Source of the DNA: Selaginella moellendorffii
Lineage: Eukaryota > Plantae > Lycopodiophyta
Assembly (NCBI RefSeq): GCF_000143415.4
Contig: NW_003314282.1
Location: forward strand, 655,700 to 719,699
Reading direction: 5' to 3'
DNA length: 64,000 nucleotides
The position numbers and the translations under genes were made by a program. How positions within the stretch are numbered: position 1 is the stretch's first letter; each line of letters begins with the position of its first letter. Positions 4,209 to 56,559 of this stretch are shown one piece after another. The notes under the pieces are model-generated. The model saw nothing but the letters and a program-made list of their open reading frames with translations, had not been told where the DNA came from and made no database searches.

Positions 4209-5645
4209 CTAATGCGAATGGACGAAGAAGGTGGCGAAGGTGGCAGCGATGATCACACCAAAAGTGGATGATCCGCGAGCGATGATCGAAGAGGATGGCG
4301 ACGGCGCATAGTTTCCTACTTGGAATGCCACTGGCAGCGTGGATTTGTCGCAAGGATCCAGCATTCCTTGCGAGGAAAGCGAGGAAGAAGAGCTCTGCTG
4401 GATCATGGAGAGGATTTGGGGAGGATAGCACAGTCCAGTGTTGTTGCCCAGCTTGAGCTTGCTGCCGAATCGCGTGATGGAATCGATCGAGAATGGCACC
4501 GGCCCAGCGAGCGAATTCTCGCTGAGATTGATCTCCGCGAGCTGGTCCAGGCGCGCGAGCTCGCGCGGGATGGCGCCCGTGAGCTCATTCCTGGCCAGCC
4601 CTAGAAACCGCAAGCTCGGGAGCGCGCCTAGATTGCTGGGAATCGCGCCGCGGAGCTGGGAATCCGAGATGTCCAGGCTGATCAAGCTCGCCCCCAGTCG
4701 CTCCCACCCGATCGATGGAATCGCCCCCTGGATTGGATTGCTGTGGAGGTAGAGCTCCCGCAATGTCGCCAGCCCTAGCAGTGGCTCGAGGAAATTCCCC
4801 TCTCTTCCTCCTCGCAAGAGATTGTGGCTCAAATCCAGGAGCTCCAGCCCCGGCGGCAGCGATTCCAGCGATCCCAGCGTCGCATTGATGCGATTGTTGC
4901 TGAGGTCGAGCTTGCGGAGGCGATCGAGGCCGGCGAGCGAGAGATTGGCGATGGAATCGAGGGCGTTGTGGCTGAGGTCGAGGATGACGAGACTGGAGAG
5001 AAATTTTAGGGTTCTTGGCAGCGCGCCCAGGATCCCCGGATTCTGGCTGATGACGAGCTGCTGGAGCGACGTGAGATCGCCCAGCTCGGCTGGAATCTCT
5101 CCTGCGAGGCCGTTGCCGACCAGGATCAAGCGCTCGAGGTTGCGCAGATTGGCGAGCTCGGCAGGGATTGGTCCCTGGAGCGCGGGATTGTTTTGGAAGG
5201 TGAGAGTGGAGAGAGTGGCGATGGCGGCGATGGAGGCGGGGATCATAGCGGGGGATTTCGTGAAGCAGCCGTAGAATGCGAGGGATTTGAGGTGGGAGAG
5301 CTTGGCGATGGAGGGATGGATTGTCGCGTTGGCGCTGCAAGAGGGCGTGTTGCTCTGGATCTTCCCCACGCTCAAGCCCACCAGATGGATCGAATTGGGG
5401 AAGCTAGAATTCGCGTCGTCGACGACGTCACAGATCATCCCCTGGAGCGTGTTCTCACCGCAAGGATCCGGGAGCAAGCTCCTCCAATCCCACTCGGAGT
5501 TTAGAGACTCCATCACCTGGAAGAAGGCTTCCTTCTCCGCGGGATCCATGCTCTGTTCGTCCTGCTGCCCGGAGATGGCGACGATGATCCACATCCACAC
5601 CAGGAAAGAAATCGCGGCCGCGCATGAGATTGGCGACGCCGGCAT
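4209..5645 (-). CDS. Intronless LRR receptor-like protein without kinase (PII-2/RLP29-like), signal peptide and hydrophobic C-terminus
   Basis: Plant extracellular LRRs (LxxLxLxxNxLxGxIP), N-cap W..PDPC...C, C-cap NxGLC, Ser-rich tail; likely start ATG 5645. Confidence 0.9.
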   Translation of the reverse strand: MPASPISCAAAISFLVWMWIIVAISGQQDEQSMDPAEKEAFFQVMESLNSEWDWRSLLPDPCGENTLQGMICDVVDDANSSFPNSIHLVGLSVGKIQSNTPSCSANATIHPSIAKLSHLKSLAFYGCFTKSPAMIPASIAAIATLSTLTFQNNPALQGPIPAELANLRNLERLILVGNGLAGEIPAELGDLTSLQQLVISQNPGILGALPRTLKFLSSLVILDLSHNALDSIANLSLAGLDRLRKLDLSNNRINATLGSLESLPPGLELLDLSHNLLRGGREGNFLEPLLGLATLRELYLHSNPIQGAIPSIGWERLGASLISLDISDSQLRGAIPSNLGALPSLRFLGLARNELTGAIPRELARLDQLAEINLSENSLAGPVPFSIDSITRFGSKLKLGNNTGLCYPPQILSMIQQSSSSSLSSQGMLDPCDKSTLPVAFQVGNYAPSPSSSIIARGSSTFGVIIAATFATFFVHSH

Positions 5646-6883
5646 CGTGACTTCCAGCGCTCCCAGATCATCCAAGTTCAAGAGTAGTGGAGGAAGAGGA
5701 AGAGGAAGATCATCAAGAAGACGCGAAGAACTCTCCTAGAAATCCCACGCTATGTGGAGAGAGGGGGAGCTACTAGACAATGGGAAGAGAAAAGAGTGGT
5801 TATGGAGTATAAGAAGTTGGATGCTTTTGGCTGGCGCGATCGATCGCTAGCTAAGAGGAGACGAGCAAAGTGGAAAAGAATGTCAAATCAAATGGATTGT
5901 TTACTCGAGAATCTTCACTGTAGCCCCCACTCGCGATCGAAGGCGCATTGTTTTCTCGAGTGGATGGACAAATTCCGGAGGAGAAATTCTTTTGCTCGCG
6001 ACTTCCTCCCCAATGATCACTGCGCTTCAACCACCAAGCGCATATGGGTGGGGGCGTGCGCGCGATTAAACAATGCCCGGCTGCCCAGCGATCGATCGGT
6101 GGAGCTATACGCGCCCAGCGCTCGATCAATCGATCATGACGAAAAGAAAGGAAAGAGATTGTTAAAAAAAAAGAGGGAAGAACTGCGCGAAAGCAGGGGA
6201 GGGGAGGGGGGAGTCGAATCACAGCTGGAGCGAATTTCTCTTAAAGAAAGGAAGAAATCGCGCTTGAATTGGATCGATCCGTGCGGCAGTGAATGGATCG
6301 AGGCGCATTAACGAAGCCAGTAAAAGCCCAAAGCAGGGGAGATTGGTGGTATCCATCCCAGGAGAGAAATGTTACAAGCGATGGATGGATCGATCGATGC
6401 GATCGATTCGATCGATTAGAAGGGATCGAGGTGGACGAATCGTTCGAAAGATTTGGGGCTTTGTTGCAGCGCTTGGCCTCCAATGCCAACGCGCCAGGCG
6501 ATGGTCGTCGTCGTTGATTTTTCAGGGATCTATGAGCAGCTCCAGAAAATCCTGGAGACGACAACAATGCGGCAGCGCGCGGCGTGATCAATCAGGATCA
6601 TCGAGCGTGAAATTTCTTTTATTTTCTCCTTTAAGAGCGTGAAAGAGAGATTCGTTTTCGTTTCGTCCGCATCCAAATGGAGAGAGGTCGCTGTAAAAAG
6701 ATGTAAGTAAAAATTCGTGGGGCATTCAAGGCAGCCGCGCCAGGGCGGCGGTTTCCTTTCTCCATGCTTGAGAACGATATAAGCCGCCAGAGAATATTCC
6801 ATTCATGTAAAAACAAGTCAGTAACGGTAAATTAATATTTACCTAGGGTTTTAATATTGCCCTTTTAGGGTTCTTGCGAAGCT

Positions 6884-17781: not shown

Positions 17782-18385
17782 CTCCACTTGCTCATCATTC
17801 TTCAAAATAACTGCCTTTCCATGGAATGCTTTGTTTGTGGCCAACAGTTCTTGGTCCTCAATCATTGCAACCGCATCCATGGCTTGAGAGCAAGATGGTC
17901 TTGAGAACAAGACAATGTTATGTTCTCATGAAAATCTTTATAAACAATTTTAAAGGCTAGCCAATTCCTATATAAGTTTATGTCATTTGCCTATGAACTA
18001 AATATTTGTTTTGTTTATACTAGTTATTGTGGGGTTTGACCTGCAATACTTTTGTGAGTGTGAGTTGATAATGTTCTCAAAACCATAGGTCAAGTGCTGC
18101 AAACAACACCACAAAAGAGCCCTCTTCACCACATACTTGCTCTAGTACTATACAAAATGTGCTTTGAACTCTTCTTTTGCTTGTTTCTTGCTGTAAAGTT
18201 GTGTTTCACAAGGTTTGCTATTTTGTGTTTGTTTTGTTTTGTTTTGTTTTTTCTTTTTATATTTGCTTTTTTCCTTTCAGCTATTTTAAGTTTGGATTTT
18301 TGTGATGAATTATTAGGCTGGCTTTGTGAGTGTGGTGGTCCTTAATCATGAAAACCTGGAGACATTCCAGTCATAGCTATGATAT

Positions 18386-19545
18386 TGTAAGCCACAAATT
18401 TTTCCTTTCCAATTTGCCAACTTACCTCATCTATCCGTCCAACGCTGCCTTGGCTTTTGCTAAGTTCCCTCGCCAAGGTTCTCGCCTATGGTACCAGCTC
18501 CTACTTGGTTTCAGCTACTCACTGCACGAGCAACGGAGTGTTAGCCATCCTTCCACGGATTCCCAAATCATTCCCAATCCCCCTCCCTGGGTTAGACTGG
18601 ACTTAAGGTTCGGCTACACTCCCCGCAAGCACAAGCAGCCAAGCACACCAAGCTTCCAGGTTCCTAACATCCCTTGGTACCACAAGACTTGATCATGGGA
18701 CCCTCTAAATCCCAAGTCTTGAGTGCAACACTTGCTTCGGGATGCCGGGGCGAAACACCGTGGCCTAGCGGCCCGGTATGGGTACCTCTCGCCCCCCACT
18801 TCCATCCCGAAGGAAGGCCCAAGCCCCTAGGGAGGGCGAGGACCAATGAGCCGCATGGTACTCAAGTGGGGCACCACTCCACATGAGCCGGGAGCACCGC
18901 AATCGGTTTCCCTTTCGGGAGTGGGAGCTGCTCTTGAGCACTTCCTTGGATGGCCCCTCCGGCACCAGCCAAGTCCATGCTCACTCCCACCCAAGGCCCC
19001 TCGGTCCCAGTCTCAACCTCAAGTCGGTTTGGAAGCCCAACTGGAGAGTCCCTTCAAAACTGGTTCCTGGACCTCACTATCCCTACTATACTTTTGGAAC
19101 CCCCTGCAGCCCCCCCCCCCCCCACCAACGTTTGCGAGAAAAAGGCTTTGTGTTTTCACCCCTTGACCCGTATTAGTATTTGGACTTAGTCTCTGGCTCG
19201 ATCTCGGACCCGATTTCGGATCCGACTTCGGAGTCGGTTTCGGACTCGATCTCGGACTCGATCTCGGACCCGATCTCGGACCCGACTTCGGACTCGACCT
19301 CGGACTCGGTCTCGGACCCGATTTCGGATCTCGGACTCCGTCTCGAACTCGGTCTCGAACTCGGACTCGAACTCGGTCCCCGAGTCGGTCTCGGACTCGA
19401 TTCCGGACTCGATCTTGAACTCGGTCCTAGAGTCAGTCTTGGACTCGATCTTCGACTTGGTCTCATCCGATGAACTCTTTGTCATTTTGGTCATGCTTTC
19501 GGGGTTCCTTTAGCCTACGACACCTCGGCGAGTTGGTTCCTTACA
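18386..19545 (-). repeat. 3' LTR of element 1, containing a TCGGACTCGATC-like tandem array (about 19190-19460)
   Basis: Near-identical to 24774-25930; polypurine tract (TATGGGGTGGTGGGAGT on minus strand) adjacent on the internal side. Confidence 0.95.
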
Positions 19546-19941
19546 ACTCCACCACCCATAGAAGAAGTTCGATGCCCACATCGAACGTCTCGTTTTATCC
19601 TACGACTTGTTGACCATGTCTCCGGGGGCATCCCCCCACTTAGCGGTGTGCCTAAGTTAGCCTCCCCGGCCAAGAGCCCATGACAACGGAATATAGGTGT
19701 CCCTATACTCCTCACCTCACCACGCCCTAGTATAGGGTCGGGACTTGAACCCAGCCTTGCTTTACTAGGGGTTGGGAACCCAACCTCCGTAGAATACGTC
19801 TACGGATTCGACATCCCCGCAGGGAGTCGGGCGTAGCTCCCTACGCCTGGTCGACCTAGCTAACCCATGCTAATTAGCTTACCTTCGGCGCGCCTTCGGG
19901 TCCCAACATATGCCATTGCTCAACTTCTCAAATTGATACTT

Positions 19942-24770: not shown

Positions 24771-24773
24771 AAT

Positions 24774-25930
24774 TGTAAGCCACAAATTTTTCCTTTCCAA
24801 TTTGCCAGCTTACCTCGTCTATCCGTCCAACGCTGCCTTGGCTTTTGCTAAGTTCCCTCGCCAAGGTTCTCGCCTATGGTACCAGCTCCTACTTGGTTTC
24901 AGCTACTCACTGCACGAGCAACGGAGTGTTAGCCATCCTTCCACGGATTCCCAAATCACTCCCAATCCCCCTCCCCGGGTTAGACTGGACTTAAGGTTCG
25001 GCTACACTCCCCGCAAGCACAAGCAGCCAAGCACACCAAGCTTCCAGGTTCCTAACATCCCTTGGTACCACAAGACTTGATCATGGGACCCTCTAAATCC
25101 CAAGTCTTGAGTGCAACACTTGCTTCGGGATGCCGGGGCGAAACACCGTGGCCTAGCGGCCCGGTATGGGTACCTCTCGCCCCCCACTTCCATCCCGAAG
25201 GAAAGCCCAAGCCCCTAGGGAGGGCGAGGACCAATGAGCCGCATGGTACTCAAGTGGGGCACCACTCCACATGAGCCGGGAGCACCGCAATCGGTTTCCC
25301 TTTCGGGAGTGGGAGCTGCTCTTGAGCACTTCCTTGGATGGCCCCTCCGGCACCAGCCAAGTCCATGCTCACTCCCACCCAAGGCCCCTCGGTCCCAGTC
25401 TCAACCTCAAGTCGGTTTGGAAGCCCAACTGGAGAGTCCCTTCAAAACTGGTTCCTGGACCTCACTATCCCTACTATACTTTTGGAACCCCCTGCAGCCC
25501 CCCCCCCCCCCCCCCCGGGAGACGCACGCTTTGGGCTTTCACCCCTTGACCCGTATTAGTATTTGGACTTAGTCTCTGGCTCGATCTCGGACCCGATTTC
25601 GGATCCGACTTCAGATTCGGTTTCGGACTCGATCTCGGACTCGATCTCGGACCCGATCTCGAACCCGACTTCGGACTCAACCTCGGACTCGGTCTCGGAC
25701 CCGATTTCGGATCTCGGACTCCGTCTCGAACTCGGTCTCGAACTCGAACTCGAACTCGGTCCCCGAGTCGGTCTCGGACTCGATTCCGGACTCGATCTCG
25801 AACTCGGTCCTAGAGTCGGTCTTGGACTCGATCTTCGACTTGGTCTCATCCGATGAACTCTTTGTCATTTTGGTCATGCTTTCGGGGTGTTCCTTTAGCC
25901 TACGACACCTCGGCGAGTTGGTTCCTTACA
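24774..25930 (-). repeat. 5' LTR of element 1
   Basis: TG...CA ends; PBS follows on the minus strand. Confidence 0.95.
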
Positions 25931-35200: not shown

Positions 35201-35582
35201 TTGACAGTTACTGTCAAGACCCCCAACAAGATCAAGACTAGAAAATGCTAAAGACAAAGAGAAAAGCTAGTGAAAACAAAGAAGAGGCCTTAGACTGGTG
35301 TTGATTCAGATTGTGGAGAAATGGAACAAGGCTAACCTATATATACTATAGGTTGATGAAGCTCCACCACTCTTGGATCGAGGACGGCCTAAATACAGCT
35401 GAGGTCGAGGAGGCGCCACATCATCATCAGGAATGTGGCTCGAGACTCAGGAATCGGGAAGTGTCTCGAGAGTCAGGAATAGGGAAGTGTCTCGAGAGTC
35501 AGGAATGTGGTCTGCAGGTCAGGAATCCGGCGAGAGTCAGGAATGTGGCAAGAATTGGGGGATTCCTGACAGCACCCCCTCC

Positions 35583-38500
35583 TCAAGAACGAGTGGAACG
35601 AGGATGTGAACGAGAACGAAGAGGAGGATGAGATGAGCGGCGAGGGATGGGAGATGGAGAAAAAGAATGAGGACTGGGACGAGAAGGATAGCGGCGGTGG
35701 AAGTCCTGAACAAGGTCAGGAGAATGAATCAGGTTGTCCGCAGGTTCCCAAGTGCGTTCCTCAGGTCCATAACCCTTCCAGTCCACCAGATAGTAGAGTT
35801 TAGACCGTGAAATCTTGGAATCAAGGATGTCTTGAACTTCGTACTCAGACCCATCCTCGAGCTGCACTGGTGGAGGCGGAGGAATGACCCGATTTGGAAT
35901 AGGACTGGGAATATAAGGCTCAAGGAGAGAGGAGTGAAAAACGGGGTGAATTTGATATGAGGAGGGAAGTGCAAGGCGATAAGTGACAGGATTAATGATG
36001 GCAGTGATAGGGAAAGGACCAAGGCGTTTGAAATCGAGTTTTGGACAGGGCCTGGTGGTAGAGATATTTCGCTTGAGGAGCCAGACTTTATCCCCGATAT
36101 TGTAAGGGGGACAATCCTGACGATGGACATTGGCAAATATTTTATGAGATTCCTGAGCACGATGAAGGTGGAATGAGATGGAGTTGTGGATTTCCTGGAG
36201 GGTGGAGATAAATGCCTCAGAGCGGGGATTTGAACGAGAGGATTCAGATGGAGAAGGAAGTGAGAGATTGAATCAGGGATTTCGGCCAGAGTTCGCAAAG
36301 AAGGGGGAAACTCGAAGAGAGGAGTGAACAGAGTTGTTATAGGAGAACTCAGCAAGGGGAAGGATATCGAACCAGTTATCCTGATGATAGTTGATGAAGC
36401 ACCTCAAAAATTGTTCCAACGTCTGAATCGTTCGCTCGGACTGCCCATCAGTTTGAGGATCATATGCCGAAGAGAGGTTGGCCTTCACTCCAAGCAGCTG
36501 CAAAAACTGTTGCCAGAAATGAGAGATGAACTGAAGCCCCCGATCCAAAACCACATCTGTAGGAATCCCATGAAGTCAGAAAATTTCCCTAAATACTAGT
36601 TTTGCCATGTCCTCGCCCGAAAACTCCTTGGTACATGGCAAGAAGTGCGCCATCTTTGTGAAGCGATCCACCACGACTAAAATGCTGTTGAAGCCTCCAG
36701 AACTCGGAAGATCACTCAAGAAATCCATGGAGATGGATTCCCAAGGACCTGAAGGGACCGGAAGGGAACGAAGCAAACCTGAAGGAAGGTGGCAAGGTAC
36801 CTTATTTCGGGCACAAGTGTCACAGGAGGTAGCAAAAGCTTTGATGTAGTCGTCCATGTGAGGCCACCAAAAGTCCCGTGCAACTAGCTCATAGGTTTTC
36901 GCAATGCCAAAGTGACCAACAGTCGGGCTATCGTGGCACGCCATCAGGACCAACCTTCGAGCATCACCTTTAGGAACGTAAAGCTGCTCCCCACGGTACA
37001 ATAAGCCATCTAAGAACTCGAACTCGTCAAATCGCCGGTAGTCGGGAGTCACTGGGTGTCCAGCCTGAAGATGGGGGAAAATGTCGCTAGCGAGATCATC
37101 GGATTGAAGATCGTTTCTGATTGCATCCATCAAGGAGGAGTCCTGAGGGGCCAGGGAAATTGCCATAACTTGAAGCCGATCAGGACCGAGGATAACTTGA
37201 TCCTGTTGATCGAAGGCAGGATTACCAGGCCTGAGACTGAGATAGGAGCGCCTTGAAAGAGCATCAGGAAGGCCTTGAAACTTTCCAGGTCTGTACTTGA
37301 TAACAAAGTCAAACCGACTCAGGAATTGTGCCCACCTTGCTTGACGACGGCTTAAAACTCGGGAAGTGGCAAAGTACTCGAGATTTTTGTGATCCGTCCA
37401 GACTGTTGTTTGATGGCTCGCCCCCTCCAAGAAACGGCGCCACTCTCCAAAGGAATCCACGATGGCAAGGAGCTCCTTGTCGTGGATTTCGTAATTGATC
37501 TCCGCAGGCTGGAATTTCCGAGAATGGAAAGCGACCGGATGAAGTTCGTGATCCACTCCAAGTTGAGACAGCACAGCACCAATGGCAAAGTCGGAGGCGT
37601 CAGCCTCGATGAAGAAAGGTTGTGAGGAATCAGCATGGATCAAGACAGGAGCAGAACTGAAGGCCGCCTTGAGTGTGTCGAAGGCCTGCTGGGCAGCAGC
37701 AGACCAAGAGAAGGGAACATCCTTGCGAGTGAGATGTGTGAGAGGAAGGACAATGTCAGAGTAGTGATCAATGAATTTGCGGTAGAAGTTGGCGAAGCCA
37801 AGGAAAACCTGAACGTCCGACATTGATTGTGGAGGCTCCCATTCGAGAATAATCTTGACTTTAGCAGGATCCATCGTGATACCCTCAGGAGTGACAATGT
37901 ACCCAAGGAACTCCACAGACTGCTGATCAAAGGAACATTTCTCAAGCTTCGTGTATAGGCCGTGTTCTCGCAGCTTCGCTAGCACCTTGCGAACATGTTC
38001 GTCATGCTCCTCCTGAGTTTTTGAGTAGATGAGGATGTCATCGAGGTAGACGATCACCATCTGATCAAGAAACTCCCGAAAAACGTCGTTCGCCATGTGT
38101 TGGAAAACCGCTGGAGCATTTGTTAAGCCAAATGGCATGACAGTGTACTCGAAGTGGCCATAGCGGGTTCGGAACGCAGTCTTCCATTCATCACCAGGCC
38201 GGATCCGGATCAGGTTGTATGCTCCACGGAGGTCGATCTTGGTGAAGAAGCGGGCACCGCCGAGGCGTTCCAACAGGTCCGAGATCAAGGGCAGCGGATA
38301 ACGGTTCCGAACAGTCACCTTGTTCAAACCTCGGTAGTCGATGACTAGCCGCAAGCTCCCATCCTTCTTCTTGACAAAGAAGACAGGCGCTCCAGCCGGG
38401 GACTGCGAATGCTGAATGTATTGCTGGTCTCGCAGCTTCGAGCGGGATTTCTCGCCTTGGGTCGGGCCATGCAAGGTGGCGACTAAGGTACGGAGAGCGT

Positions 38501-41289: not shown

Positions 41290-43078
41290 TCAAATAACCA
41301 AAACGAGCTAAAAGAAAAGCAAAAAGCACAATCTGAATCAAACTGTCAAGACCCCCAACAAGATCAAGACTAGAAAATGCTAAAGACAAAGAGAAAAGCT
41401 AGTGAAAACAAAGAAAAGGCCTTAGACTGGTGTTGATTCAGATTGTGGAGAAATGGAACAAGGCTAACCTATATATACTATAGGTTGATGAAGCTCCACC
41501 ACTCTTGGATCGAGGACGGCCTAAATACAGCTGAGGTCGAGGAGGCGCCACATCATCATCAGGAATGTGGCTCGAGACTCAAGAATCGGGAAGTGTCTCG
41601 AGAGTCAGGAATAGGGAAGTGTCTCGAGAGTCAGGAATAGGGAAGTGTCTCGAGAGTCAGGAATGTGGTCTGCAGGTCAGGAATCCGGCGAGAGTCAGGA
41701 ATGTGGCAAGAATTAGGGGATTCCTGACAGTTACCCCTCTACCTTGGCTGGCCTAAAAAGTTTGGCAACTCTTCATTATTATAGAAGATTAGTATTGCCT
41801 AACAAATGCTGGGTGAATACAAAAATCTAGAATTGAATGCAATTTATTTTTATAATTTTCATATTTTTATGAAATTGTCCTCTTTTATTTGGCTTGTCTT
41901 CTATATAAAAAATATAGTCATAATTTTCATATATCTGGACAATATGAACCATCTGTTGTATTATGAGTCTTGATATCTCACTATGTTTTAAAATTTTAAG
42001 AACATTAATATATTACTTAGACAAAGCAGAAGAAGAATTATAAAGAATAATTTTATTAATATAGATGCAGTATTACTCCAACATATTACTATCTAAGCAA
42101 AAGTAACCAGGAATAATTGTTATTAATATAGATGTAGGATGGAAACTTAATTATATGGAAGTTTTATAGCACTAAGATTTTAAGAATTTAGTCATGGCTC
42201 CATATACTTACATGTCATTCCCAAGTAAAGAGCCATACCCAAACTTCTATATACCCAATCTTAGATTGCAAGCAAAAGCTACATCCAAGCCTCCTTGAGC
42301 AAAGATCCCATGGCAATGGGATTTGTAATTATTATCTTTCAAAATCTTGCATTAATTAGTAAAATACACAATGTTTTCTTAAGTAGACTGAAATCCTTCT
42401 AAGACATTTAAATTTAAATGATAGTCTACCTGTCTACTTATTTGCCAGAATTATTTTTACTTTTGTAATACTTAATACACTTCATAGATTAATATTAAAA
42501 AAAATACATCTATTTTTAAGGGTTTTTTTGTTGGAGCTTTGATCATGGAGCTACATTCTTGATAAGACCAAGCCAACCCAGCCATGTTTGAGCGGTGGAA
42601 TGTCATCTTGGTTTTAAATTTAAATCTGATACCTAGATTACAGGAAAATGCATATTGCTGGATCAGTACAGACAAAGGAATGAAGAATTGTCATGTAGGA
42701 TTGCTCAAAGCAAAACACCCTGTGATGAGCAGAGGCATGGCTGCCAGGTTCAAGGTGACAGGACACTCACCGCCATAGTCATGGAGCTTGCATACCGAGA
42801 CTGTGGCTTGGAGAGTGTGCTGGGAGCTTCAAAACTGTAGCTGTGCAAAAGTTTTACTAGTTTAGTTTATTATAACCTCCCTGTTTATTCTTCGGATTCT
42901 CAAGGTTGACGAAGCCGAAACACTTCGACTTTCCATCGGAGTCCCCGGAGTACTCCTCTACTGTACTCCTTCAGTTGATTTTTATCTTTTTCGTTGCTGT
43001 CTTAGGTAAAGGTCCGCCTCTGTCTAATCTAAGACCTAGCCTTAATACACAGGATTTCCCCATCTCTTAGGATCGACT

Positions 43079-50896: not shown

Positions 50897-53717
50897 ATGA
50901 AGAATGCGTCCTCGTCTTCTCTCCGCTACTGCTGGCGGCACCGGATTTCCTCGCGGCATTCTTCGTTTGTAGGTTGGAGTAGAGTAGGATTGCTCGATTC
51001 TTGCGTCAATCGCCGGTTTTTGAGGCGCGGGAGCTTCGTCCGGCAAGCGAACGCTGGATTGTCCTGGCGGGATAACCAGGCATTCGCGGAGAGGCGAGCT
51101 TACGCGACATCGGCCAAGATCAAGCACGGCTTCGTTTGCGAGAATTGTGGGACGATTCACGCGAAGTGGCATGGATTTTGCAACCAGTGTCGGCAGGCCA
51201 ATAGCTTGAAGGAGTTTACAAATGTAGTGAGTAGTGGGAGCAGTGGAGGAGGAGGAGGAGCTGGGGCGAGGGCAGTGGAAGGAGTGGGATTGGCCGATAG
51301 AGCCAGTGCCAATGGTGGGATTGTAGAGTTTGGAAAGAGGATGAATAGGCCTTACTTGGGAGCCAAGGCCGAGCTCAAGCCTCAACGCTTGGCCGAGATC
51401 ACAGCGTCCAAAAACCACTTGCATTGGCGGCTTTCACTGTAAGTTTCACTCCTTTCTAGCTGGTTTTGAAAGTTTCTTAATGGATTCTTCCACAGGCCTG
51501 GGAAGACGGGCTCGGAGATAGCCAGAGTTCTTGGAGGAGGTCTTGTTCCAGGTTGATTGAATTACTCCATCATTCAGTCTTTTCTTATGCTTACATCCTC
51601 CATATATTTGCAGGCTCTCTGATTCTCGTCAGTGGTGATCCTGGAGTTGGCAAAAGCACGTTGCTCTTGCAGGTTTGTGCTGGAATTTTTTTTGTCTCGC
51701 TCGAATGCATGTATTTTAACAGAACTATCCCAGTTGGCGGAGATTGTCTCAGTTGGGGCCGATGAAGCAGCTCCGGTCCTCTACATTTCTGGGGAGGAGG
51801 TAATAAATTTCAAAGTTGGATCCTTAAACATCAAGTCTTACTTTTTGTTCATTGTAGAGCGTTGAGCAAATCGGAAACAGAGCGGAGCGGCTAAAAATTG
51901 AGTCCAACGAGATCTTTATCCTGTCTGCTACAGATCTTGATGTAAGTTGTGTCGAGCTTTCAACTTTTATGACATGGTGGGTCTTGTAGGTTGTTCTTAC
52001 GTGGATTCAAGAAATTGTGCCGCGTGCTGTTGTGCTAGATTCTATCCAGACAGTCTATCTACCAGATGCTTCTGGAAGTGCAGGAAGTATTTCTCAGGTA
52101 CGCGAGAAAGCCCGAGCATTTTATTTAATCTCTTGCTTACCACGTAAGAGTTTTTCAGGTCAGAGAATGCACTTCGGCTTTGCTACGGGTAGCGAAGAAG
52201 ACAAACACTGCCATTTTTCTGGTGGGTATGTATGCTGGAATTTCTACCTGATAGACCATAACTATTGGCGATATAAAGATTGGGCATGTAACGAAATCTG
52301 GAGAAATAGCGGGGCCACGTACATTGGAGCACATGGTTGATGTTTGTCTTCACTTGGAGGTAAATGGTTTTTATCTTTGTTCGTTTGAGGTTGCCAAATA
52401 TTTATTGTCTCCAGGGAGACCGTCTTTTGTCTCAACGGCTTCTAAGATCACTAAAAAATCGCTTCGGTTCTACGAAAGAGGTGACTGTCTTTCAGCATTT
52501 GATTTTAAATTGAATCTTGCTGTTTTATCTTTATCACAGGTGGGCGTGTTTGAGATGGTCGACAACGGTTTACGAGCGGTAGAAAATCCCAGTTTGATGT
52601 TTCTCTCTGATAGAACTGGGGAGGACAGTAATGCATCAGCCACCGTTGGGGTGGCTTTGGAAGGATCTCGGCCGCTGCTGGTTGAAATCCAGGTAAGCGA
52701 CTTCTAGGATATACGTTGGGTGATGATACTTTTAGCCAAATCTGAGCGTTGTCTGGCTGCTCTAGCTTTCCAGGTTCAACGAGAGACTGGTGGTAGATTC
52801 TTTGGAATTTCCCGAGTTTCGAGTGAGCTGGACTGCCAAGAACAGTTTCTCTGACTTGCCATGATCTGACTTTAAAACCGAGAAGCGTATCTGACAACGA
52901 TCAAAAGCTAAAGTTTTCTCCGGCATGAACGCGCGTTTTGCAGGCCTTATGCTCTCCTGCCACTTCACTGCCAAGTAAAAGAACGTTCACTGGAGTGGAT
53001 CCATCTCGATTCAATCTGATTGTTGCCGTAAGTCACTCCATAAATATTCTCCACTCTTGTGAGGCTTGACGCTGTGATGCCAGGTCTTACTCAAACAAGC
53101 GCGCTTGAGACTTGCAAGACAGGTGCGCTTTGTACTTTGTGCTAGCAAAAGTTCTTTATGCTGAAATACTGCTCTAGGATATTTTTGTTAATGTTGTTGG
53201 AGGCTTTCGTTTGGAAGAGCCCGCTACAGATATTGCTGTTGCCGTCGCTATTGCCAGCAGGTACTTTCTCTCGACTAGCTGGGCTCACGAGCTTCGTCTT
53301 GCTTGCAGCTATATAGAAAGGCCGGTTCCTCGGGACACAGTCTTTGTTGGTGAGCTAGGACTCGGGGGAGAGCTGCGCTTTGTAAGTTCTTACGTGGTTT
53401 CTCACTTTTCAATGCTGGAAATTCCGTCCATGCAGGTAGCTCAACTCGAAAGGCGACTGTTTGAGGCATCCAAGCTGGGTTTCAAGAAATGCATCGTCCC
53501 ACAGGGTGCCAAAGGAGTCAAGGTGGACGGGATGGAGCTTATTCTTTGCTCGAGCCTCAAGGACGTTCTAGAGAAAGTCTTCAACTACAAGAGCCTGCCC
53601 CAGCAGCGAAAGAGTGGAGCCACGGTTCATTTGGATGCGTTTCCGGAAGAAGACGGGGTGTGTGGTGAGGTCCAAGTCGGTCAGGACGCTCTTGACGATG
53701 ATCTTGCTAATGGGTAA
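50897..53717 (+). CDS. RADA: Organellar DNA repair protein RadA/Sms
   Basis: C4 zinc finger FVCENCG...CNQC, GDPGVGKSTLLLQ, YISGEE, DSIQT, GHVTKSGEIAGPR, KNRFG, EGSRPLLVEIQ, GELGLGGELR. Confidence 0.96.
52714..52899 (+). ncRNA. Candidate intronic box C/D sno/scaRNA with U2 snRNA-complementary guides
   Basis: Terminal stem CGTTG/CAACG; C box GTGATGA 52720-52726; D' CTGA 52742-52745 after TTAGCCAAAT; D CTGA 52891-52894 after CCGAGAAGCGTAT; lies in an unusually long 251-nt intron. Confidence 0.75.
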
Positions 53718-54291
53718 TAAGCTTTTGCATCGTAAATTTTTTATCTCACAGGTGTACATATAATTTAGCAATTTTAAATGTTCCAAGGCTAGATCTAGCA
53801 ATATGATTGGCGGTCTTGATTGTTCTCTTAGCCTCAACAAGCATCACCCAGAAGAGGGTGGAGGGGCTGTGATTGTCTCCTACCTTGGACAGTGCTCGTG
53901 TGATCCCCTTCCTCGTTGTGTAGAGCTAGAACATTGCAACGCTGGAGTGGCTGCTTGGAACCAGTGGCACGTAGAGGATTGAGCCACAAGAAGAAGAGTG
54001 CATTGGAAATAAGGAGAGGCAGGTGAGGACAATCCATCCTTGACTGACTTTAAAGCAATGCAATGAATATGCTTGTTATTAATAATGTAGAATACATTAA
54101 TGTTTTTTAGTTTTATAGTTTTATATAAAAATAAGAAATTAAAAAAACATTATTTTAATTAAAATTATTTCTCCATAATATTTTCTTTAATTTTTTTTAT
54201 AAAAATGTTACTATTAATTGTCCATATCTTCTATTTTTAAAATTGCAAATACTATGTAATTTGAGAAAAATACATTATTTTTTTATATAAG

Positions 54292-55681: not shown

Positions 55682-55970
55682 CCTCACTCGCCACCCATCG
55701 AGCCCATCTCCAGATGCAAATCGCGTATCTTCTCCCTGCTCCGGAAGATTATACTGTAAAACACTTCAACCATACACAAGACCCTGTATATGCATAGCTT
55801 ATCTCTATTTATCCCCTAAAGTTATAAGGATCCACACTGACAGTCTGTTGTAATCTCATCCCATAATCATATACGCTATAAATAAAGTATAAATATCATT
55901 TAACTATGAAATTTTAAAGAGTTAACTATAGATATCCTATTTCTACTGGCCATAATTTATGGGTATTAAA

Positions 55971-55982
55971 TATGTATGTATG

Positions 55983-56077
<95 letters not shown>

Positions 56078-56116
56078 GTATATGTATATGTATATATATA
56101 TGTATATATATATGTA

Positions 56117-56185
<69 letters not shown>
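55971..56185. repeat. (TA)n / TATG microsatellite
   Basis: Direct reading. Confidence 0.97.
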
Positions 56186-56559
56186 TACCTTACTTGGGAA
56201 TTATAGTACCATAGCATATAAATTGTTCAATTGGGCGTGAATCTAATTCATCCATTCCTGTATATAAGCAGGGTTCTAAACCCCATTTAGTATACTTATA
56301 TCTCAAAGCTTTATATTTTTAATTTATTAAATAGCTTATTTCTCAATTTTTAATTCAAATAGAGTGGAGCTAGTGAATTATTTTTTCTTTATTTGCACAT
56401 TATTTCTTTATTTACCATTTTCTAGTGGTAGTGATAAATATTAGCCAATGAAGGTTTACCCTAACCTTTGCATTATTTTATTTTAAATGTCTTTTAAACC
56501 ATTATCATTAAAGACTTATTTCTATCCTCTCAAGATAAAATTATCCCTTCAAAATATTC

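Follow-up and report, generated by a model that had tools for sequence, protein, structure and literature searches.

An intron of the RadA/Sms gene of the spikemoss Selaginella moellendorffii carries a candidate box C/D guide RNA, located at positions 52714-52899 on the plus strand of the window (the whole 64,000-nt stretch of DNA that was analysed). Its boxes, terminal stem, K-turns and G19-directed D' guide together uphold the interpretation, put forward in an initial annotation made from the letters alone, of an intron-hosted box C/D guide RNA gene. Judging from these sequence features, we assign a probability of roughly 0.55 to the reading that the element is a working U2-Gm20 guide RNA of the full form first described.

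The RadA intron and its box C/D architecture

RadA/Sms is encoded on the plus strand at about 50.9-53.7 kb of the 64-kb window. The initial annotation had named RadA as the host gene, and this identification is confirmed by a database model of a sister copy (P0156, 612 aa), which scores 490.6 bits against TIGR00416 (cutoff 403). The flanking exons match P0156, with residue Q426 of the model corresponding to the end of the window exon that reads ...ATVGVALEGSRPLLVEIQ. The expression data consisted of assembled contigs without strand, and X1, X4 and X2 were taken as RNA runs because they carry spliced joints. Spliced contigs in X1 and X4 skip exactly 251 nt on the plus strand (52693-52943; GT at 52693, AG at 52943), compared with 48-59 nt at the six neighbouring RadA introns. 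The snoRNA intron is accordingly 4-5 times longer than its neighbours, in line with the roughly fivefold excess noticed at the outset.

The element opens with the 5' strand of a terminal stem (CGUUG, 52714-52718), which forms five Watson-Crick pairs with the 3' strand CAACG (52895-52899). A 3-nt bulge, GGU (52719-52721), leads into GAUGA, and box C reads GUGAUGA (52720-52726), which fits the RUGAUGA consensus. There follow the D' guide (52730-52740), complementary to U2 nt 17-27 in plant numbering, a perfect CUGA as box D' (52742-52745), a long spacer hairpin between D' and C' (52746-52859), a degenerate box C' (AUGAUCU, 52861-52867) that keeps the GAU core and has a 3-nt CAU bulge before its GA, the D guide CCGAGAAGCGUAU (DNA CCGAGAAGCGTAT; 52878-52890), whose +5 nucleotide is C52886, and box D (CUGA, 52891-52894), all on the plus strand. 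Judged by sequence, the terminal K-turn reads CGUUG-GGU-GAUGA against CUGA-CAACG, and the internal one comprises the hairpin stem, CAU and GAUCU against CUGA. The 5-bp stem, the GGT-GATGA K-turn and the D' and D boxes named in the initial annotation are all present as described, in position as well as in motif.

The 116-nt spacer between D' and C' (52746-52861) folds as one long hairpin with a minimum free energy of -39.7 kcal/mol (z = -2.1; 7 of 200 shuffles fold as well), which agrees with the earlier proposal that this stretch of about 120 nt can form such a structure. Its basal pairs, G52746-C52859, C52747-G52858 and G52748·U52857, provide the canonical stem of a second K-turn; because they abut D' and leave the 3-nt CAU before the GA of C', the internal boxes also fit a K-turn. 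Variation among the five paralogous copies described below gave no covariation support for the hairpin. The pentamer CGUUG occurs twice in the element, in the terminal stem and directly after D', and the longer string CGUUGUC (52747-52753), directly 3' of D', is perfectly complementary to GACAACG (52893-52899). Pairing of these strings into a 7-bp helix, which takes in the GA of box D, would mask box D in naked RNA.

We scanned both strands of the window (128 kb) for TGATGA followed by CTGA at a distance of 60-300 nt, with a flanking stem of at least 4 bp, and the element was the sole such pair; block shuffles gave a chance expectation of 0.27 C/D pairs with a 5-bp stem per window. Rfam searches at gathering thresholds returned no match in the window or in the four sister loci. 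In E-value mode (E <= 10), only weak generic C/D matches appeared, the best being snoZ6 (E 2.8) and SNORD48 (E 6.9), so that the Rfam check proposed for the element yielded no significant match. A tRNA scan was negative. The chance rate of C/D pairs and the lack of an Rfam match are compatible with the absence of a functional guide RNA, in which case the motifs would be fortuitous or the decaying remains of one, and the intron would owe its length to other causes and have spread by recent segmental duplication. We regard this reading as rather unlikely, since the motif is located exactly in the one outsized intron and the geometry is right in both K-turns.

At least five copies of the RadA 3' half, each with the snoRNA intron, occur on scaffold GL377596.1: one in the window (52267-54000) and the others at loci L001 (7552-9269), L002 (4403-6164), L003 (4273-5990) and L004 (about 4371-5993). 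L004 represents the full RadA gene (model P0156), and the gene models of L001-L003 join a prolyl-oligopeptidase N-terminal domain (Peptidase_S9_N) to the RadA C-terminal ChlI/Lon-like domain. An exon-sized word search for orthologous introns found no match; longer queries (a 150-aa reading-frame stretch and model P0001) recovered only S. moellendorffii copies, followed by Marchantia, Riccia and Chara sequences at about 50% identity. Beyond this gene family, the window contains direct repeats about 6.1-6.4 kb apart and 94-99% identical (18384-19546 versus 24772-25887, and 35210-35739 versus 41342-41739), the first pair carrying arrays of 12/18-nt units of GGACTCGATCTC-like sequence. Downstream of RadA, the AT-rich spacer contains a long (TA)n/(TATG)n microsatellite (55911-56233).

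Among the five copies, 4% of alignment columns are variable in the snoRNA intron, against 16% in the other introns and 7% in the exons. Because the duplication was recent and divergence is low throughout 52481-53083, this conservation is little proof of function and does not indicate RNA-specific selection, a point that also favours the non-functional reading. All five copies preserve the boxes and the D' guide, the latter without a single difference. Position 52720 is A in the four other copies, which keeps the RUGAUGA consensus, and position 52861, A in the window, is G in L004 and still a purine. The D guide is unchanged in four of the five; L001 has a change within it at 52884, together with a stem-breaking change at 52716.

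Predicted pairing of the two guide positions with U2

The D' guide forms 11 bp (10 Watson-Crick and one G·U) with the invariant U2 stretch UUUGGCUAAGA of natural U2 from other organisms. Within the guide, TTAGCCAAA is complementary to UUUGGCUAA of natural U2 genes, and a single nucleotide separates UUAGCCAAA from the CUGA of box D'. Counting back five nucleotides from D' leads to C52737, whose U2 partner, the first G beyond the U run, is numbered G20 in plants and G19 in humans; the assignment of G19 by the +5 rule in the initial annotation is therefore reproduced with natural U2. A random 15-mer of intron composition equals the pairing of the D' guide anywhere in U2 in 0.35% of trials. The annotation had also called G19 a known 2'-O-methyl site, and the equivalent Gm20 of Arabidopsis U2 has indeed been detected by RiboMeth-seq and assigned to SnoR127; the U2 methylation map of that plant comprises just seven positions, G20 among them (Wu et al., PMC8053127).

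Taken together, the pairing supports the prediction that the D' guide selects U2 G20 (human G19). Were the element non-functional, part of its U2 complementarity could stem from the self-complementary sequence of U2 stem-loop I; that the +5 nucleotide falls on a known U2 methylation site, of which there are only seven, and does so from the same box as in the Arabidopsis guide, argues for a functional guide instead.

For the D guide, we used as a comparison set 119 natural U2 loci of other organisms from a metagenome scan with the search pattern UUCUCGGCCUUUUGGCUAAGAUCAAGUGUAGUAUCUGUUC. All 119 loci share UUCUCGGCCUUUUGGCUAAGAUCAAGUGUAGUAUCUGUUC, which is the search pattern itself, and they differ only at the extreme 5' end: most start with AUACCUUUCUCGG, others with AUACCUUCUCGG, a few with AUCGCUUCUCGG, and scattered rarer variants make up the rest. 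The D guide (52878-52890) is the reverse complement of ATACGCTTCTCGG and pairs perfectly only with a hypothetical U2 start, AUACGCUUCUCGG, which occurs in none of the 119 loci; a metagenome scan for U2 starting ATACGC also found none. Within the 64-kb window there is no spikemoss U2 gene, and the D-guide target has no further match there. The literature searched yielded no Selaginella U2 sequence, and the U2 5'-end strings matched no paper.

With the common plant-type start AUACCUUUCUCGG, the D-guide duplex has 11 Watson-Crick pairs and one G·U pair, and its single mismatch, C·C, falls precisely on the +5 position. The energy of this duplex, -14.0 kcal/mol, is unremarkable relative to a null whose 1% tail lies at -15.1 and is in keeping with a non-functional element, whereas the duplex with the hypothetical AUACGCUUCUCGG start reaches -22.5 kcal/mol, beyond all 3000 null trials. 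Two parts of the initial annotation thus need to be separated. The D-guide sequence is present and is complementary to the string that had been likened to the U2 5' end, but that end is not seen in any of the natural loci, and the description of the element as bearing two guides is not supported with common plant-type U2, where the mismatch falls on the very nucleotide to be methylated. Judged by complementarity, methylation of nt 5 by the D guide, and hence a second guide function, would require spikemoss U2 to start AUACGC.

A further string in the spacer, AAGAACAG (52838-52845), lies 6-13 nt upstream of an internal CUGA (52851-52854) and is complementary to U2 CUGUUCUU (nt 41-48). Owing to a U·U mismatch at +5, this pairing does not constitute a canonical guide.

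RNA contigs and the form of the product

RNA contigs revealed that the snoRNA intron is also retained or alternatively spliced. An alternative 3' splice site, the AG at 52764-52765 on the plus strand, lies inside the snoRNA and gives a joint from 52692 to 52766 that skips 73 nt. The depth of this joint is 13.2 in X1 and 63.4 in X4, compared with 51.5 and 262.3 for removal of the full intron, which amounts to about one-fifth of the combined depth. Splicing at this AG takes away box C and the D' guide. The mRNA then retains the other 178 nt of the intron, which contain an in-frame stop (52862).

Run X2 alone contains a short block of very high contig depth at about 52784-52891, with no strand assigned. 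The summed contig depth across three bins of this block is 2172, 9860 and 2796, versus 17-19 in the flanks, although contig depth in X2 is not fit for ranking the parts of one gene. Upstream sequence, from the exons through the C box and the D' guide as far as 52813, is carried by a contig of depth 19.2; a second contig, of depth 17.5, begins at 52862 and extends into the exons downstream. Neither the C box nor the D' guide falls within the high-depth block. About 12% of the X2 depth at 52861 carries both variants typical of copy L004, indicating that the abundant RNA derives from these intron copies. At face value, an RNA of about 52784-52891 that lacks box C would stand hundreds of times above the host mRNA, a figure that reflects contig depth in one run.

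This pattern gives no support to the species of about 185 nt anticipated in the initial annotation, because the sole run with a depth signal is high only over a part of the element that includes neither the C box nor the G19 guide. The full-length RNA was not seen among the contigs, which again suits a non-functional element. It also raises the alternative that the stable product is a shorter 3' RNA of about 105-115 nt (about 52784 to 52891-52899), the full 186-nt form being minor or transient. Such an RNA may be built from a C-like UAGAUUC (52794-52800), an alternative stem (52788-52792 with 52895-52899), the internal CUGA and the same box D, and it would carry the stretch complementary to the U2 5' end without the guide for G19/G20.

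We consider this shorter product unlikely, even though several observations fit it. The high-depth block is flanked by low-depth contigs towards both the C box and the downstream exon, the L004 variants tie its RNA to these intron copies, and the spacing from the internal CUGA to C' is 6 nt, which is canonical. A T-to-C change at 52788 in three copies, which breaks a pair of the long hairpin, converts a U·G into a C-G pair in the alternative stem. Set against these points, the depth is of a kind unsuited to comparing parts of a gene and comes from unstranded contigs of one run, and the block appears to reach box D at most. Of the C-like box only the GAU core is retained, and four of the five possible pairs form in the alternative stem, which is near chance. 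The likeness of the two 5' regions, which would point to an internal duplication of the C-box region, is not significant, and the guide before the internal CUGA has the U·U mismatch at +5 noted above.

The right edge of the X2 block, at or near 52891, is also compatible with descent of the 3' part of the intron from the first ~50 nt of U2, copied long ago in antisense orientation, or with the X2 RNA being a minus-strand transcript that starts U2-like with AUACGCUUCUCGG. From 52890, the minus strand is collinear with U2 nt 1-54 and shares the strings AUAC, UUCUCGG, UUUU, AGAU, CAAGU and CUGUUCUU, giving an alignment score of 15 against a 95th-percentile null of 14. This score is only marginally above chance (null maximum 23), the branch-point-binding GUAGUA is missing, and Rfam U2 gave no match at E <= 10. 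Visual inspection of the minus strand revealed no plant snRNA promoter elements upstream, and the block folds no better than shuffles on either strand. Given the marginal alignment and the missing GUAGUA, we regard the antisense reading, whether as a U2 pseudogene or as a minus-strand transcript, as very improbable.

Counterparts in other lineages and possible mode of action

The closest published counterpart is snoR127 of Arabidopsis, a box C/D RNA of 138 nt that resides in an intron of LSM4 (At5g27720), has been seen by northern blot, is predicted to guide U2 Gm20 through its D' guide and has been called the counterpart of human mgU2-19/30 (Chen and Wu, PMC2685112). Like snoR127, the spikemoss element is intronic, is longer than ordinary C/D snoRNAs (186 nt, compared with 138 nt for snoR127) and would select U2 G20 through the D' guide. 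The two differ in their host genes, LSM4 in Arabidopsis and RadA/Sms in the spikemoss. No sequence or covariance-model similarity to snoR127 was detectable in the spikemoss element by Rfam search at E <= 10, the presence of a snoR127 model in Rfam being presumed from PMC7464842.

Human mgU2-19/30 (SCARNA9), as cited in PMC2685112, is a long C/D RNA that guides 2'-O-methylation of U2 G19. The spikemoss element resembles it in addressing the equivalent U2 nucleotide and in being a long C/D RNA directed at a Pol II snRNA. It differs in that the human RNA has two domains, with a second guide for A30, whereas the second guide of the spikemoss element faces U2 nt 1-13. Because plant and human counterparts for the same U2 site have been published, the element is less novel than first thought; it likely belongs to a known RNA class and not to a new one, with no Rfam match and with a host different from that of snoR127.

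The designation of the element as a scaRNA in the initial annotation is not supported in that form. The predicted target of the element, identified by complementarity, is a Pol II-transcribed snRNA (U2), as expected of a scaRNA. Vertebrate C/D scaRNAs are directed to Cajal bodies by long UG-repeat stems, and no long stem of this kind was seen by eye in the spikemoss element. For plant C/D RNAs, no Cajal-body localisation signal has been defined (PMC8053127, PMC2685112), and the localisation of plant 'scaRNAs' is described as uncharacterised (Wu et al., PMC8053127).

If the element works as a U2-Gm20 guide RNA of the full form, the spliced intron would be trimmed by exonucleases, as in the known class, to a particle resting on two K-turns. 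The first would be formed by boxes C and D and closed by the 5-bp terminal stem, and the second by C' and D' and closed by the spacer hairpin. The D' guide, bound to U2 nt 17-27, would place fibrillarin at G20 (human G19) for methylation. Its role would thereby equal that of Arabidopsis snoR127 and of the G19 domain of human mgU2-19/30.

The D guide most likely serves as a helper pairing. Arabidopsis C/D guides often pair additionally near their targets, including at six snRNA sites (Wu et al., PMC8053127). The spikemoss D guide is similar in that its pairing site would lie on the same U2 molecule, 3 nt upstream of the D' duplex, and differs in that the extra pairing fills the whole second guide position, with 13 nt abutting box D. 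By pairing with U2 nt 1-13, it would hold the 5' strand of U2 stem-loop I, leaving the G20-containing strand free for the D' guide.

More specific proposals build on this pairing, and as a group they seem doubtful to us. In a two-handed U2 clamp, the D guide may seize U2 nt 1-13, including the 5' strand of stem-loop I, and so let the D' guide reach G20; these nucleotides presumably also include the region that forms U2/U6 helix II. In another version, the D guide may specify an undescribed methylation, that of nt 5 in a lineage-specific U2 starting AUACGC. A further possibility is that the abundant 3' form of about 108 nt, lacking box C and made through the alternative splice site, is a separate RNA that binds the U2 5' end.

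The element leaves the general picture of snRNA modification unchanged. Should the preferred reading as a full-form U2-Gm20 guide hold, it would extend the U2 Gm19/Gm20 guide from flowering plants and animals to a lycophyte and would imply a move of the guide into an unrelated host gene, with target and box usage retained. The alternative splice site that destroys the snoRNA suggests competition between splicing and guide-RNA production, and the D guide facing the extreme 5' end of U2 provides a concrete instance in which helper pairing on an snRNA substrate could be tested.
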